Part shown: one piece after another, positions 3,001 through 21,000 of the stretch
Layout: each line of letters opens with the position of its first letter
How positions within the stretch are numbered: position 1 is the stretch's first letter
Source: Lytechinus pictus
Taxonomy: Eukaryota
Direction of reading: 5' to 3'
DNA: 64,000 nucleotides
Assembly: GCF_037042905.1 (NCBI RefSeq)
Contig: NC_087254.1
Coordinates: 9,424,001 to 9,488,000, forward strand
Position numbers and translations under genes: made by a program
Notes under the pieces: model-generated
Seen by the model: the letters and a program-made list of their open reading frames with translations, nothing else
Database searches by the model: none
Told to the model about the DNA's origin: nothing

Positions 3001-6000
3001 GATTGAAAGTGGTAAAATTTGGCAGCCATTTTGTGTATGCAAATTAGGTGGTCAAAACATGAGAAATCAGCTTGGGAACCTATCTAATCATATTCAGCAC
3101 ATTGGAATAATGTGAAATAGAGCGGTTTCCAGCTTTTACCCTAAAATGCTTCAAGAACTACAATTTTCCTGCAAGGGGTCTTGAATAAAATATCAATAAC
3201 TAATTATGATTCTTTGCATATGTATTTTCACAAAATGTAGGCTCACTGATAATTCCCTTAATCATGGTGTACTGTATACATAATCACTACTTTTATTATA
3301 ATTGCTTTAAGAACAGATTAGAAGTTCACCTACAGATTCAAACAGCATACAGATAGTCAAAAGAAAACAAAAAAGAAGGTACAAATGTAAATACTAACCC
3401 GAGATGTCACTAGATCCTCTGGACCAAAATGTTTCATGATCCTGCAGGCCTGGAAAAGTAATTTATATCCAAAGTAATGTTTCATGACTGAATTTTTCCA
3501 TTTCATATCCCCAAAATATGTTAGTGGCATTAAATAAAATGAATCTTACATCAAAATCTCTAGTAATGCAGAACTGATGCGGAACTTCTAATGATGAAGA
3601 GTGCTCGAATCCTAATCTCTCTATTGTTTGATGGTTAGACAGATTGGATGGATGGAACTACGTCAATATTATTGTCTTCTTCATCATTATCATCACCATT
3701 ACCTTCTTCTTTTTCATGATCATGATCATGATGATGATGATCATCATCATCATCACCATCATCCTCATCATTTCTATCATCACCATAATCACCATCGTTA
3801 TCATCCCCATCCCCATCATCATCATCATCATCATCATCATCATCATCATCATCATCATCATCATCATCATCACCAACATCATCATTATCATCATATAATA
3901 ATAATATAGGGTATTTATATTGCGCACATATCCACCTTGTTAGGTGCTCAAGGCGCTCCTATATTACCCGGCTAAGCTAGGCGTTCATAGCGCACACAGC
4001 TTTTTAAGGAATTACTTCCTACCGGTACCCATTTACCTCACCTGGGGCCCGTTGCATAAAACCCCAACCGGAGTTTTTTCCGGTTGAAATCATGAAATTC
4101 CGGTTGGAAGCTCCCAACCGGAATTTTTTGATTGCATAAACATTCAACCGGACTTTTTTACGGTTCGCCTGACAAAACTCCGGTTGAAATCTGAAAAAAT
4201 CCGGTTCAAGTAACCCTTGCTCTCTGGGTCAGGGTTGCTACCATAAAAATTCCGGTTGGAAGTATTGGTTCCACAATGGCTGCAATATTGCATGCAATCC
4301 AGGCTGGGGCAGCTCTCAGAAGAGAGAGAGTTTTCCGTGACAGGCTGCATCCCTTAGATGCATACGATGATCTCCAAATCCGGAAGCTATACAGATTCAC
4401 CAGGCACGGTTGTATCGCCATCATCAACAAGCTGGCCCCGAGAATCGAGCACCCGACTCAAAGAAATATGGCCTTGCCACCTAGCCTTCAAGTTTTTGTT
4501 GCGTTACGGTATTTTGCAAGTGGAAGTTTGCTCGATGATACAAGTTTTGTGCATGGCATACACACATCAACTGCATCAAGAACCATCCAGAGAGTGGCAC
4601 AAGCACTGTTTGAAATGAGGGATGAGGTAATTATATATTTTATTCACATTATATAAAGTAAACAATTAAGAAAATGACCTAGGCCTACGGCCTTAGAATC
4701 TACTTAAGTCAAGAAAGAATTTTTTGTTGGGTTGTTTATTATGCTAACATTAACAATACTCCAATACTAATATATCACAAAAAGTCAAAATACATTATTA
4801 CAGGGCCTACTACAAAATAACCATGTCTAGTATGAGGATGGCAGTGGGAGCCTGATGCAATAAACTAATTAAATCATTATTTATTCCTCGACAAAAGCTC
4901 AAATCGCTACCCGCAAAAAAAAATCGAACACCGTGCACCGCCAGCGGTACATCAGTCCCATACATGCAAAGTTATGTTGGGTACCGTGCAGACTCCTTGC
5001 CCTCGCTCCGCCTCGGCCAAAGCCCCGGAGGGGTAGCGTAGACGTAGGCTGGCCGGCGTTGACATAGACTCTGCATCGTAATTAGCTAAGTAGGATCTAG
5101 CACGACAACTTTTAAGAAGTTAAACGAGGATAAAGTAATTGTAAAACACATTCTCACCATTGTCAATCACAGTGCATTATATGTTAGTTTAATGGCTTCT
5201 AGCACAAGATTATTCGAGGGTTCACATGTTCTATTCCTCATTCTCAGACTCAGGCTCAGCTAGCTCAGAAAAAAATTACTTCAGCTTGCAATTGTATGGT
5301 GGTCTTCGTCGTGTAAATTGAAAAAGGAAAAAATATATCAGTACAAAATAGACTACTAATAATATTCAGCAATATAACGAGATGAAAATCATCTAGCATT
5401 ATCTTTTGTTGCCTTTGTTTGCCAAAGGCAGCACATCATGACGATGTATACATTTTCAGTATTGCCCAGTGGTTGTTATTTCAAAACATCCTAGTTTAAT
5501 GAACTGCCAATTATAACTGGAATTATTATAACCCTTTTAATCAATTTTTATTTTTAGTCGTATATGAAAGCTACGTCCTTAGAATGAAAGAGCTGATCAC
5601 AAAAGGTGAAAAATTAAATAAAAAGTTATTTTTCAAGGGTGTGAGTAGCGGATTTTGATTGGGGGCATGTGATTTTCAATGAGTGAAAAAAAAAGGTGGG
5701 GGATATATCGGGGCGGGGGGGGGGGGTAGTGAAATATATTACTCTACACATGCATGACCAAAAAAGCATGTTTAAATAAAGGGGCGTTTTTTCCAGTTTC
5801 GGATGTGTGCCCTCATTTAGGGTATCAAAAACATCAATTTTCAAGAAAAAGGGTGGTTTTGAAAGACTGGTCAATCAAGGGGTCAAACGTACTTAGGGTA
5901 TGTATTTTTTTCCACAAAGAGAAAAAACTCATTTTGGGGGGCATTTAATGCCTCCCCCCCGGGCATAGGCGGAAGAAGCGGGGGGGGGGGGGGTCTTGTC

Positions 6001-18000: not shown

Positions 18001-21000
18001 TAGATCAATGTCAGACTACTGTTGGTGGTGGTCGTGATCTTTCTGTTGTTGAACCATGCAGGTCCAGGACAGAATCTAACTAGAAAAACTGTTTTGCTAA
18101 CACCAACTTACGTTGTCACTAGCAAGATTTAACATTGGATTTCTCTAACTTTTAGACTCTAGCCTCGATGTCTTGGCTATCTGTCTTGGCTATGTAATAT
18201 TAGAACAAATGGACATTAGACCAAATAAAAATTAGACCAAGTGACAATTAGCCCAACTGGGCATTAGACCAATCGGCAACTAGACCAAGTGGTCATTAGA
18301 CTGTTTGGCTATTATTAGACCAAGTGGTCATTAGACCAATTGGATATTAGACCAAGTGGAAATTAGCTAGACTAAGTGGAAATTAGACCAAGTGTAAATT
18401 AGAACATGCAAATGGTCATTAGACCATGACAATTATACGAAATGAAAATAAGACCAAGTGGAAATTTGCCGAAGTGGAAATTAGACCAAGTGGTGTTAGA
18501 CCAACTGGAAATTAGACTAAATTGTTTTAGCCCAACTGCTCATGAGATGAATTGGATATTAGTACTACAAGTAGGCCTACTACTAGATCAAGTGGGAATT
18601 AGACAAATTGGATATTAACTTAAGTTAGATCTAACAAATAACATTTACCATGTGAGAAGCCCAATTGCATAATTTAGCCCAAATGGAAATTAGACGAATT
18701 GGAAACCAAGTAGGATTTTGACGAACTGGGTCCCGTAACACAACGGTTAGCGATTAATTTTTACGCTTGATTTTCACGGTTGATTGTACATTGTAATTAG
18801 TCTATGCCATGGAATCAATCGTAGAAAAATGTTAGTAAGCTTTTTTGTGTTACGGGGCCCTGGTTGAATGTGTAGGCCTAGGCCCTACACGAAATTGGAA
18901 ACTTTGTTAGACTTGCTTGGGCCTTATGTCTATCACTCTATGTGAAGTTGGAATTGGATGAACTGATAACACTTACAGTAACTACAGTGTCAGTGATAAA
19001 TCTAGCCTAAGTTAGATCTAACGTTAGGCAGAGAAGGCCAAGTAACTTAGATATTACTATAAATAGACCCATCCATGCAATTCCAAAGACCAGGCAAGCC
19101 AATAGTTCACCACTGTACTGACTAAGTACCGCCACCGGTACTAAAGTAATGTAATGTCTCACTCTCAGACTCAGTCTCACTCTCACTCCTCAGTCTCACT
19201 CACTGTCTCAGCTCACTGCACAGTTACGTTAGAATACATTGTAACTTAGATTTCGAGACTTTGAACATCATCTGAGTTTGATTCTAGATCTAGATCATGT
19301 CAAAAGAAAAGATATAGCCTACAATGTACATTTATGCACTGTCTTTGATTTTCGTATAATTTGTTCGATAATGCAGATTTACACGGCGCAGTGCAGTTCA
19401 CGTCATACATGCAGATCGTCGCATGGTGTAGCGGGGCGCGATGCACCTCGATGCCCGGATCTTAGGGGGCAAGTGTGCTCGAGACTCCGCTCACCACGAC
19501 TAGATCAAATTCTACCACGATCTTTACGAATGAGACATCGCAAATAAATCAAGAAAAAGGGGACATTTTTACCGAAGTAATATTAATGAATTACATACGA
19601 GTCATTTTCATAACATCATACTTTCGGTCAATAATATATGAAAATGTATTATAAACGGAAAATGATATTCCTTACCTCATTTGTTGGAAGAGCCATGCTG
19701 AAATATGATGTGTCGCGGTCGAGTCGCACCACTTCTCGCGGGAAATTTGTTGCACAAAAATTCAATCAATTAATGCGCGCATCCTCGTACCAGCATATTC
19801 ACAGATTGAAATAAATTCCAAACCGCGCTTCCAACCATAAAAAATAAATTCGGGTTGGTTTCAACCCGAATTTTTCAAGGTTGGCAACCTGAGCTTTTAT
19901 GCAAACGATTTTACAAACTAAGGTTACCGACCCTAGGAAATTTAGGTTGGGGTATGCCCAACCTAAATTTTCTAAGGTTGGTAAAAAAGTTTTATGCAAC
20001 GGGCCCCAGGGTTGAGTGCAGCACACTGTGGATCAGTTTCTTGCTGAAGGAAATTACGCCATGGCTGGGATTCGAACCCACGACCCTCTGTTTCAAAGTC
20101 CGAAGACTAATCCACTGGGCCACAACNNNNNNNNNNNNNNNNNNNNNNNNNNNNNNNNNNNNNNNNNNNNNNNNNNNNNNNNNNNNNNNNNNNNNNNNNN
20201 NNNNNNNNNNNNNNNNNNNNNNNNNNNNNNNNNNNNNNNNNNNNNNNNNNNNNNNNNNNNNNNNNNNNNNNNNNNNNNNNNNNNNNNNNNNNNNNNNNNN
20301 NNNNNNNNNNNNNNNNNNNNNNNNNNNNNNNNNNNNNNNNNNNNNNNNNNNNNNNNNNNNNNNNNNNNNNNNNNNNNNNNNNNNNNNNNNNNNNNNNNNN
20401 NNNNNNNNNNNNNNNNNNNNNNNNNNNNNNNNNNNNNNNNNNNNNNNNNNNNNNNNNNNNNCCTTTAAATCAAGTGGGTCTCTGTGATAGAACGCTTCAA
20501 CTGCCGGTGAGACCAAGCTTGGCTGCTGTTTCAGTATAGCGGCTAGCTTGGCTGGCATCAGGCAATGGGTATGATGAAAATTGGATTGCACTTTCGAAGG
20601 GAATCTGCAAATATCAATCCACACAAAGTTGATAGTTAAACACTGAGTGACTTCAAGATTGGTGTTGGTGTTAAAAATGTGACAGACTGCTGAACAGGGA
20701 AAGATATGGATGGCATTATCGATAGCTCATGATGTCACACCTCTGCCGATCATCTCAATAGCATGCGAGAAGTCTTGAAGATGATAGTAAGACCGGCATA
20801 AAATTTGGTAACCTCACATCACATACGGTGTTATGGCTGGTGTTGACATTTGTACGATACCATAAAAGGTTTCAACACTGTATTTGAAATCACCCTCTCT
20901 TGATTTCTAAAAAATTTTCATCAAACTGTCTTTAGAATGGTTGTTGAAAATGATGAAATTATTACGTACTTTTCAGAAGTATATTCACCAAATTGCATAC

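Follow-up and report, generated by a model that had tools for sequence, protein, structure and literature searches.

The stretch analyzed here, referred to as the window, comprises 64,000 nucleotides of the Lytechinus pictus genome (RefSeq assembly GCF_037042905.1, contig NC_087254.1, positions 9,424,001 to 9,488,000, forward strand), and coordinates without a prefix refer to it. The best explanation for its positions 4045-20006 (15,962 bp), inside an intron of the gene ECD, is very probably a complete insertion of an autonomous-type PIF/Harbinger transposon belonging to the CWG-targeting NuwaI group; the assignment to NuwaI is due to the CWG duplication, the ends starting with GGG, the pairing of a DDE_Tnp_4 transposase with a Myb-like protein, and the animal host. 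On this reading the element is a new, oversized member of a described group, and it is otherwise ordinary and well preserved.

The boundaries are set by two terminal inverted repeats (TIRs) of 18 bp, GGGCCCGTTGCATAAAAC at the left end and its exact reverse complement at the right, which agree at 18 of 18 positions. This 18-mer has 355 exact occurrences in the 812-Mb genome and its reversed control has 0, which excludes chance and identifies the repeat as a family signal. Immediately outside the TIRs, the 3-bp flanks form a CWG duplication in which two of three positions match; the four features are as follows.

4042..4044, no strand: target-site duplication, left copy, CTG, which fits the consensus of the interrupted repeat described below
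4045..4062, + strand: left TIR, 18 bp, begins GGG (GGGCCC)
19989..20006, - strand: right TIR, 18 bp, exact reverse complement of the left one
20007..20009, no strand: target-site duplication, right copy, CAG, one mismatch to CTG

The sequences on the two sides of the element are the adjoining halves of a single copy of a tRNA-derived short interspersed nuclear element (SINE). Rejoined with a single CWG, they yield a 30-mer with ~8,842 genomic occurrences at no more than 2 mismatches; CTG stands at the insertion position in all the listed copies of this empty-site 30-mer, and the restoration of the consensus from the two halves points to one precise insertion at CTG. Related ends are mostly flanked by CTG or CAG (CWG in 18 of the 27 listed), and C13 has a 1-kb derivative between the two copies of a perfect CTG duplication. 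Loose read ends at 4046 were considered as a trace of the empty allele and rejected: they continue as SINE consensus, and hence come from other SINE copies. The host SINE itself (3940-4044 plus 20010-20127) is tRNA-derived and very abundant, and a run of N at 20128-20462, ~120 bp to the right of the element, falls inside this same SINE and the same ECD intron. The exact 18-bp end is also seen in some inverted pairs 130-155 bp apart, making up tiny elements similar to MITEs (miniature transposable elements with inverted repeats), for example at C1:38464365-38464494, C2:49913305-49913439 and C4:1464355-1464509; these pairs are not assignable as products of the window transposase, given that their subterminal sequence differs and matches to the left end are few.

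Two convergent genes lie between the TIRs. The first, on the + strand, encodes the transposase: its ATG is 231 bp from the left end, and its four exons splice into an open frame of 344 aa with the motifs AIDCTH, HDSR, GDSGY and IEQ, separated by introns of 2665, 518 and 1360 bp, all GT-AG.

4063-4275, + strand: left subterminal region and 5' untranslated region (UTR), with 8 CCGGTT/AACCGG motifs
4276-4626, + strand: transposase exon 1, aa 1-117, helix-turn-helix (HTH)/DUF8040 region; weak Pfam HTH_Tnp_4 match
7292-7558, + strand: transposase exon 2, first catalytic D (AIDCTH) and HDSR; DDE_Tnp_4
7774-7996, no strand: nested foldback MITE in transposase intron 2, with 69-nt arms, 91% complementary
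8077-8213, + strand: transposase exon 3, second D (GDSGY); weak PF13359
9100-9499, no strand: nested repeat of very high copy number, within transposase intron 3, seen from read depth
9574-9853, + strand: transposase exon 4, E (IEQ), including the stop codon; from the spliced frame

Pfam PF13359 (DDE_Tnp_4) matches exon 2 with an E value of 3e-12, and exon 3 weakly; comparison of exon 1 with the protein atlas returned a DUF8040/HTH-type N-terminus. From aa 25 to 343 the transposase is 39% identical to an intron-less Harbinger transposase of 347 aa from the same genome. Read depth is very high at 7700-8099, over the MITE region of intron 2. As for the 9100-9499 repeat, RNA reads of a related organism contain many joints there that go back about 164 nt, as if the unit were tandem or rearranged elsewhere.

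The second gene, on the - strand, encodes the Myb-like partner: its ATG is 310 bp from the right end, and its five exons splice into an open frame of 228 aa with introns of 3093, 1434, 1198 and 1881 bp, again all GT-AG.

19697-19988, - strand: right subterminal region and Myb 5' UTR, with 6 GGTTGG/CCAACC motifs, palindromic pairs
19676-19696, - strand: Myb exon 1, 7 codons; from the spliced frame
16469-16582, - strand: Myb exon 2; from the spliced frame, with a 95-96% identical stretch at C18:13924870-13925350
14884-15034, - strand: Myb exon 3, C-terminal half of the Myb/SANT-like domain; Pfam Myb_DNA-bind_4/5
14017-14587, no strand: nested 570-bp foldback MITE in Myb intron 3, with 72-nt arms, 93% complementary
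13573-13685, - strand: Myb exon 4; from the spliced frame
11404-11691, - strand: Myb exon 5, with an acidic stretch, the KKSKKRK motif resembling a nuclear localization signal, a C-terminal helix and the stop codon; from the spliced frame
10945-11502, no strand: tandem array of 163 bp, 3.5 units, derived from the 3' end of the Myb gene; shared with the fragment at C18:2012440-2013160
10434-10718, - strand: second open copy of the last Myb exon, 8 differences in 285 nt compared with 11407-11691

Exon 3 matches PF13837 (Myb_DNA-bind_4) with an E value of 5e-7 and PF13873 (Myb_DNA-bind_5) with 5e-6, and exons 2 and 4, searched singly, gave no Pfam match, the pieces being too short. The KKSKKRK motif belongs to exon 5, and no comparable motif was seen in the transposase. 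Taken together, the two genes have 1,722 coding nucleotides and 14 splice sites, all intact like both 18-bp ends. The preliminary description of this DNA had reported perfect 18-bp TIRs, uninterrupted proteins of 344 and 228 aa, convergent genes with ATGs 231 and 310 bp from the ends, and seven GT-AG introns with nested MITEs, and each of these points was reproduced.

The length usually given for Harbinger-type elements is 4-5 kb; this one reaches 16 kb because its seven introns gained MITEs and other repeats, and because the 3' exon of the Myb gene was duplicated. The 570-bp MITE has dozens of genomic copies at 82-87% identity, while an internal duplication of ~970 bp within 10055-11691 gave rise to the second last exon of the Myb gene; the 163-bp array, being shared with the C18:2012440 fragment, is ancestral. 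No passenger gene accounts for the extra length, which consists of introns, nested repeats and the duplicated 3' exon, so the earlier label of a large-cargo transposon finds no support.

Regarding expression, reads and contigs of public runs were aligned to 3900-9899, that is, to the transposase half. A 522-nt contig of run X1 joins 8076-8207 to 9568-9899 with 0 mismatches, and the 1360 nt that it skips correspond to the predicted intron 8214-9573, with a 6-nt repeat ambiguity at the junction. Searches with exons 2 and 4 found no intron-less copy of the transposase in the genome, so that the joined form of exons 3 and 4 is most simply cDNA; splicing of the transposase mRNA as predicted at intron 3 is supported, and the element appears to be at least partly expressed. 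The second X1 contig covers 7466-7557 with 0 mismatches and ends at the exon 2 boundary with 30 unplaced letters, which is suggestive of the exon 2-3 junction and too short to count. Of the splice junctions, which the preliminary description had proposed to confirm by RNA-seq, the X1 data thus support the one between exons 3 and 4.

The history of the lineage was read from the coding sequence and the ends, by comparison with a paralog on C12, the nearest for exon 1, and with a relative found in two metagenome contigs of 1 kb (L066 and L067, ENA assemblies ERZ17093956 and ERZ27290227). This relative has the left end, exon 1 (90% aa identity) and an intron at the corresponding place; it sits in another flank, next to a CTG duplication, and its presence in both contigs implies that animal DNA carrying the family was present in the samples. 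Between the window and C12, 58 of the 351 nt of exon 1 differ, distributed 9/4/45 over codon positions 1/2/3, with a ratio of nonsynonymous to synonymous substitution rates (dN/dS) of ~0.03. The NG86 dS values, from 1.2 to saturated, are inflated, and differences at four-fold sites were relied on instead (window 4045-4626 against L057:4422-5003 and L066:75-652): in exon 1, 40% of these sites differ from C12 and 60% from the metagenome relative (40-67% over lineage pairs), whereas the non-coding 231-bp left end keeps identities of 93.5% and 78%, respectively (76-93.5% over three lineage pairs). The right end is 93-96% identical to the same-lineage right ends on C18 (96%) and C31 (93%). Alignment persists, at 79%, over the initial 566 bp of intron 1, and the start of this intron is perhaps also constrained beyond synonymous sites.

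Judging from these substitution patterns, the lineage is old, has been kept functional and has long been under purifying selection, at exon 1 and at the ends alike, in agreement with the earlier proposal of a long-lived, gene-like element. Conservation of the ends beyond that of synonymous sites is expected from selection for transposition and not from host domestication; moreover, the copies compared are non-orthologous, so the signal reflects the transposon lineage and not the ECD locus.

As for other copies in the genome, a DNA search with the whole element was dominated by the 570-bp MITE (39 of 23,400 candidates scored), and the census therefore relied on repeat-free segments and exon proteins, with copy structure taken from the search coordinates. 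Related fragments occur at no fewer than six loci, including a left-end piece on C20 and a middle piece at C18:2012440. The copy at C18:13921670-13930035 is collinear with 15999-20006, spanning Myb exon 1, the 3.1-kb intron 1, exon 2 and a nested repeat (15974-16160), and is broken beyond this part by large insertions. Its collinearity implies that, by the time of the lineage's last transposition, the element already had long introns and one or more nested repeats; the right-hand 4 kb of the bulk, or more, thus appears older than that event, and the antiquity assigned to the nested repeats in the preliminary description holds for one or more of them. The intron positions are common to several Harbinger families of this genome at 44-71% aa identity, and large, intron-bearing Harbingers are a habit of the genome.

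One such family, a sister of the window element with the end repeat GGCCCCGTTGCATAAAAC, has the same convergent two-gene, multi-intron layout in 12.7 kb. Two of its copies, at C24:684252-696931 (12,680 bp) and C3:77474585-77487231 (~12,650 bp), are 99.76-99.78% identical over the three ~3-kb stretches compared and have different flanks, their homology starting exactly at the end repeat; a third copy (89-92%) lies near C24:395390-408220, and right ends at more than 25 other places show 97-98% identity. Near-identical 12.7-kb copies in different flanks indicate that elements of such size moved recently as units, and from its sequences the sister family looks recently active. Several near-identical copies in different flanks are found for the sister family and not for the window element; consequently, the former is the direct evidence for whole-unit movement, and it is the stronger lead to a large Harbinger that is active at present.

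Several findings weigh against an autonomous-type element in the window. Apart from the window element, the assembly contains no complete copy of the lineage, and all same-lineage copies are fragments at 79-96% identity; the C12 copy, for example, retains the left end and exon 1, is without exon 2 and carries 4 stop codons in exon 4. No other genomic match exceeds 75% aa identity for exon 2, or 58% for exon 4 with all 143 candidates scored, and the segment 11692-15770 has no other genomic copy, nested repeats aside. To these are added the one mismatch in the target-site duplication (CTG/CAG) and the RNA support, which consists of one contig of depth 4.6, from a run of unrecorded type, over the 3' half of the transposase gene only. 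For a related organism there are three runs, one listed as RNA, and none has reads on exons 2-4 at ≥92%; their coverage is confined to the nested repeats and to a stretch of exon 1 with ~93% identity. The preliminary description held that the element still moves as a 16-kb unit, and the genome search that it proposed for full-length copies in different flanks returned none for the window lineage; with a sole complete copy, fragmentary relatives, an imperfect duplication and no passenger gene, the claims of movement and of cargo are unsupported.

These findings lend themselves to the reading that the window copy is an immobile relic, intact-looking and with no stop codon yet, which is transposition-incompetent owing, for example, to missense changes, epigenetic silencing or excessive length. 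This is a serious contender, falling somewhat short of an even chance: the single complete copy with no near-identical sibling anywhere in the genome and the imperfect duplication both suit it, as does the 2.8% divergence of the Myb-exon duplicate, by which either this copy or its parent is not brand new. However, the two reading frames (1,722 nt) are intact, as are the 14 splice sites and the 18-bp ends on either side, the X1 contig indicates a transposase transcript that is spliced, and the recent movement of the 12.7-kb sister family means that size alone is no bar.

Much less probable is incipient co-domestication of the transposase and Myb pair by the host, as occurred with HARBI1/NAIF1 in vertebrates and PIF/MADF in insects, for which a route from a single insertion has been described (PMC9710019). 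The single complete copy with both genes open, the strong purifying selection on exon 1 and the apparent transcription are all compatible with it. Domesticated pairs are, however, recognized by the loss of end repeats and duplication and by the absence of related mobile copies (PMC9710019), and here both ends are free of mismatches and mobile relatives exist; besides, the non-coding ends are conserved beyond synonymous sites, as only transposition would select for, and the selection signal comes from non-orthologous copies and so belongs to the lineage. The want of exon 2-4 reads in the runs of the related organism speaks weakly against this reading, too.

Finally, a composite of two partial elements or a mis-join that mimics one 16-kb element is very improbable, since the N run from 20128, the 970-bp duplication and tandem arrays of the interior, which are hard to assemble, and the imperfect duplication would be in its favor, but the flanks are halves of a single SINE that rejoin to the exact consensus 30-mer, both genes have all their exons, correctly ordered and in frame, an identical layout of 12.7 kb occurs at two loci of the sister family, and the internal array recurs in the independent C18:2012440 fragment.

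Turning from the element to its surroundings, ECD exons (Pfam SGT1) are present on both sides of the element, on the - strand.

24880-25212, - strand: ECD exon; Pfam SGT1
20466-20624, - strand: ECD exon; SGT1 profile positions 183-229
near 3400-3455, - strand: small, weak ECD exon, from the SGT1 search
~2740-2880, - strand: ECD exon; SGT1 profile positions 245-291

The element, inserted in the SINE, makes up ~94% of the ~17-kb intron of this essential host gene, and the earlier statement that it nearly fills the intron is borne out. Upstream of ECD, a Roadblock/LC7 exon at 26959-27309 on the + strand (Pfam E value 7e-9) belongs to a neighboring gene of the dynein light-chain type.

Regarding the mechanism, Sinzelle and colleagues reportedly found in 2008 that a reconstructed Harbinger3_DR transposes with its transposase and a Myb-like protein. 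By analogy, the 228-aa Myb-like protein of the window element would bind subterminal repeats, of the CCGGTT type on the left and of the CCAACC/AGGTT type on the right; as the carrier of the KKSKKRK motif, it would bring the 344-aa DDE transposase to the nucleus and to the ends, where the transposase would cut at the 18-bp inverted repeats and reinsert the element at CWG with a 3-bp duplication. That the proteins bind DNA, interact with each other and are catalytically competent is in this way extrapolated from the zebrafish system. The left subterminal region holds 8 of the 18 CCGGTT/AACCGG occurrences in the window, which are putative binding sites of the Myb-like protein, and the right end holds 6 of the 23 GGTTGG/CCAACC occurrences. 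The predicted complex of transposase exon 1 with the C-terminal Myb exon, modeled as exon-sized pieces, had a score of 0.01, with folds at a predicted local distance difference test (pLDDT) value of ~50, and so weighs neither for nor against binding. In the known systems, the interaction between transposase and Myb-like protein is needed for nuclear import (PMC9710019, citing Sinzelle 2008 and Hancock 2010).

More broadly, the window element and its sister may represent a clade of gene-like NuwaI elements of 12-16 kb, with seven conserved introns, that persist for long under selection on both proteins and on the ~230-bp ends and transpose whole; this proposal is tentative and on balance doubtful. 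If it were true, introns would be a tolerated landing pad, through which an element grows without losing function. If either the window copy or the 12.7-kb sister is active, it would be a natural transposase system moving inserts of 12-16 kb. With one lineage at 16 kb and a sister lineage copied at 12.7 kb with 99.8% identity, this transposase and Myb system already tolerates 2-4 times the normal length, which bears on the cargo limits of cut-and-paste transposition and possibly on vectors for large inserts. The lineage also offers a clean case of a transposon whose non-coding ends have changed less than the synonymous sites in its transposase gene.

Compared with known systems, the window element shares with HARBI1/NAIF1 and PIF/MADF the origin of a transposase and Myb/MADF pair from one insertion, with genes that are open, under purifying selection and, to judge from the X1 contig for the transposase, transcribed; it differs in that those pairs have lost ends and duplication and have no mobile relatives, whereas here ends and duplication are kept, mobile relatives exist and the ends are constrained. 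With Harbinger3_DR of zebrafish it shares the two-protein system, the CWG duplication, the short end repeats and the subterminal repeats, and it differs in being four times longer than this 4.2-kb element with 12-bp ends. Its D,D,E transposase of the DDE_Tnp_4 type, its Myb/SANT gene and its short TIRs with a 3-bp duplication are those of PIF/Harbinger, and the CWG (not TWA) duplication and the ends that start with GGG, of a length within 12-61 bp, are those of NuwaI. Within the PIF/Harbinger-ISL2EU-Spy (PHIS) superfamily, the NuwaI group is defined by the CWG duplication and by end repeats of 12-61 bp that open with GGG, together with a DDE transposase, a Myb/SANT partner and an animal host (Han et al. 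2015, Mob DNA 6:12, PMC4482050); in the rows of its Table S5 compared here, transposases measure 341-346 aa and their Myb_DNA-bind_5 partners 198-280 aa, the end repeats span 12-26 bp, and the consensuses run from 1.1 to 8.5 kb, with a mean of ~4.5 kb. The same rows include NuwaI-3_CGig (Harbinger-5_CGi) of Crassostrea gigas, with 18-bp ends and proteins of 341 and 228 aa, NuwaI_NVec of Nematostella, with a transposase of 344 aa, and HARBINGER3_DR, there named NuwaI-2_DRer, with 343 and 221 aa (PMC4482050). The comparison was made on hallmarks, protein lengths and domains, and not on identity to the listed family sequences: the 18-bp TIR and the 228-aa Myb-like protein are as in NuwaI-3_CGig, and the 344-aa transposase is as in NuwaI_NVec, these two being the nearest designs in those rows. 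The window element differs from the group in its 15,962 bp, ~2 times the largest consensus in those rows (8.5 kb), and in its seven long introns, nested repeats and duplicated Myb 3' exon.

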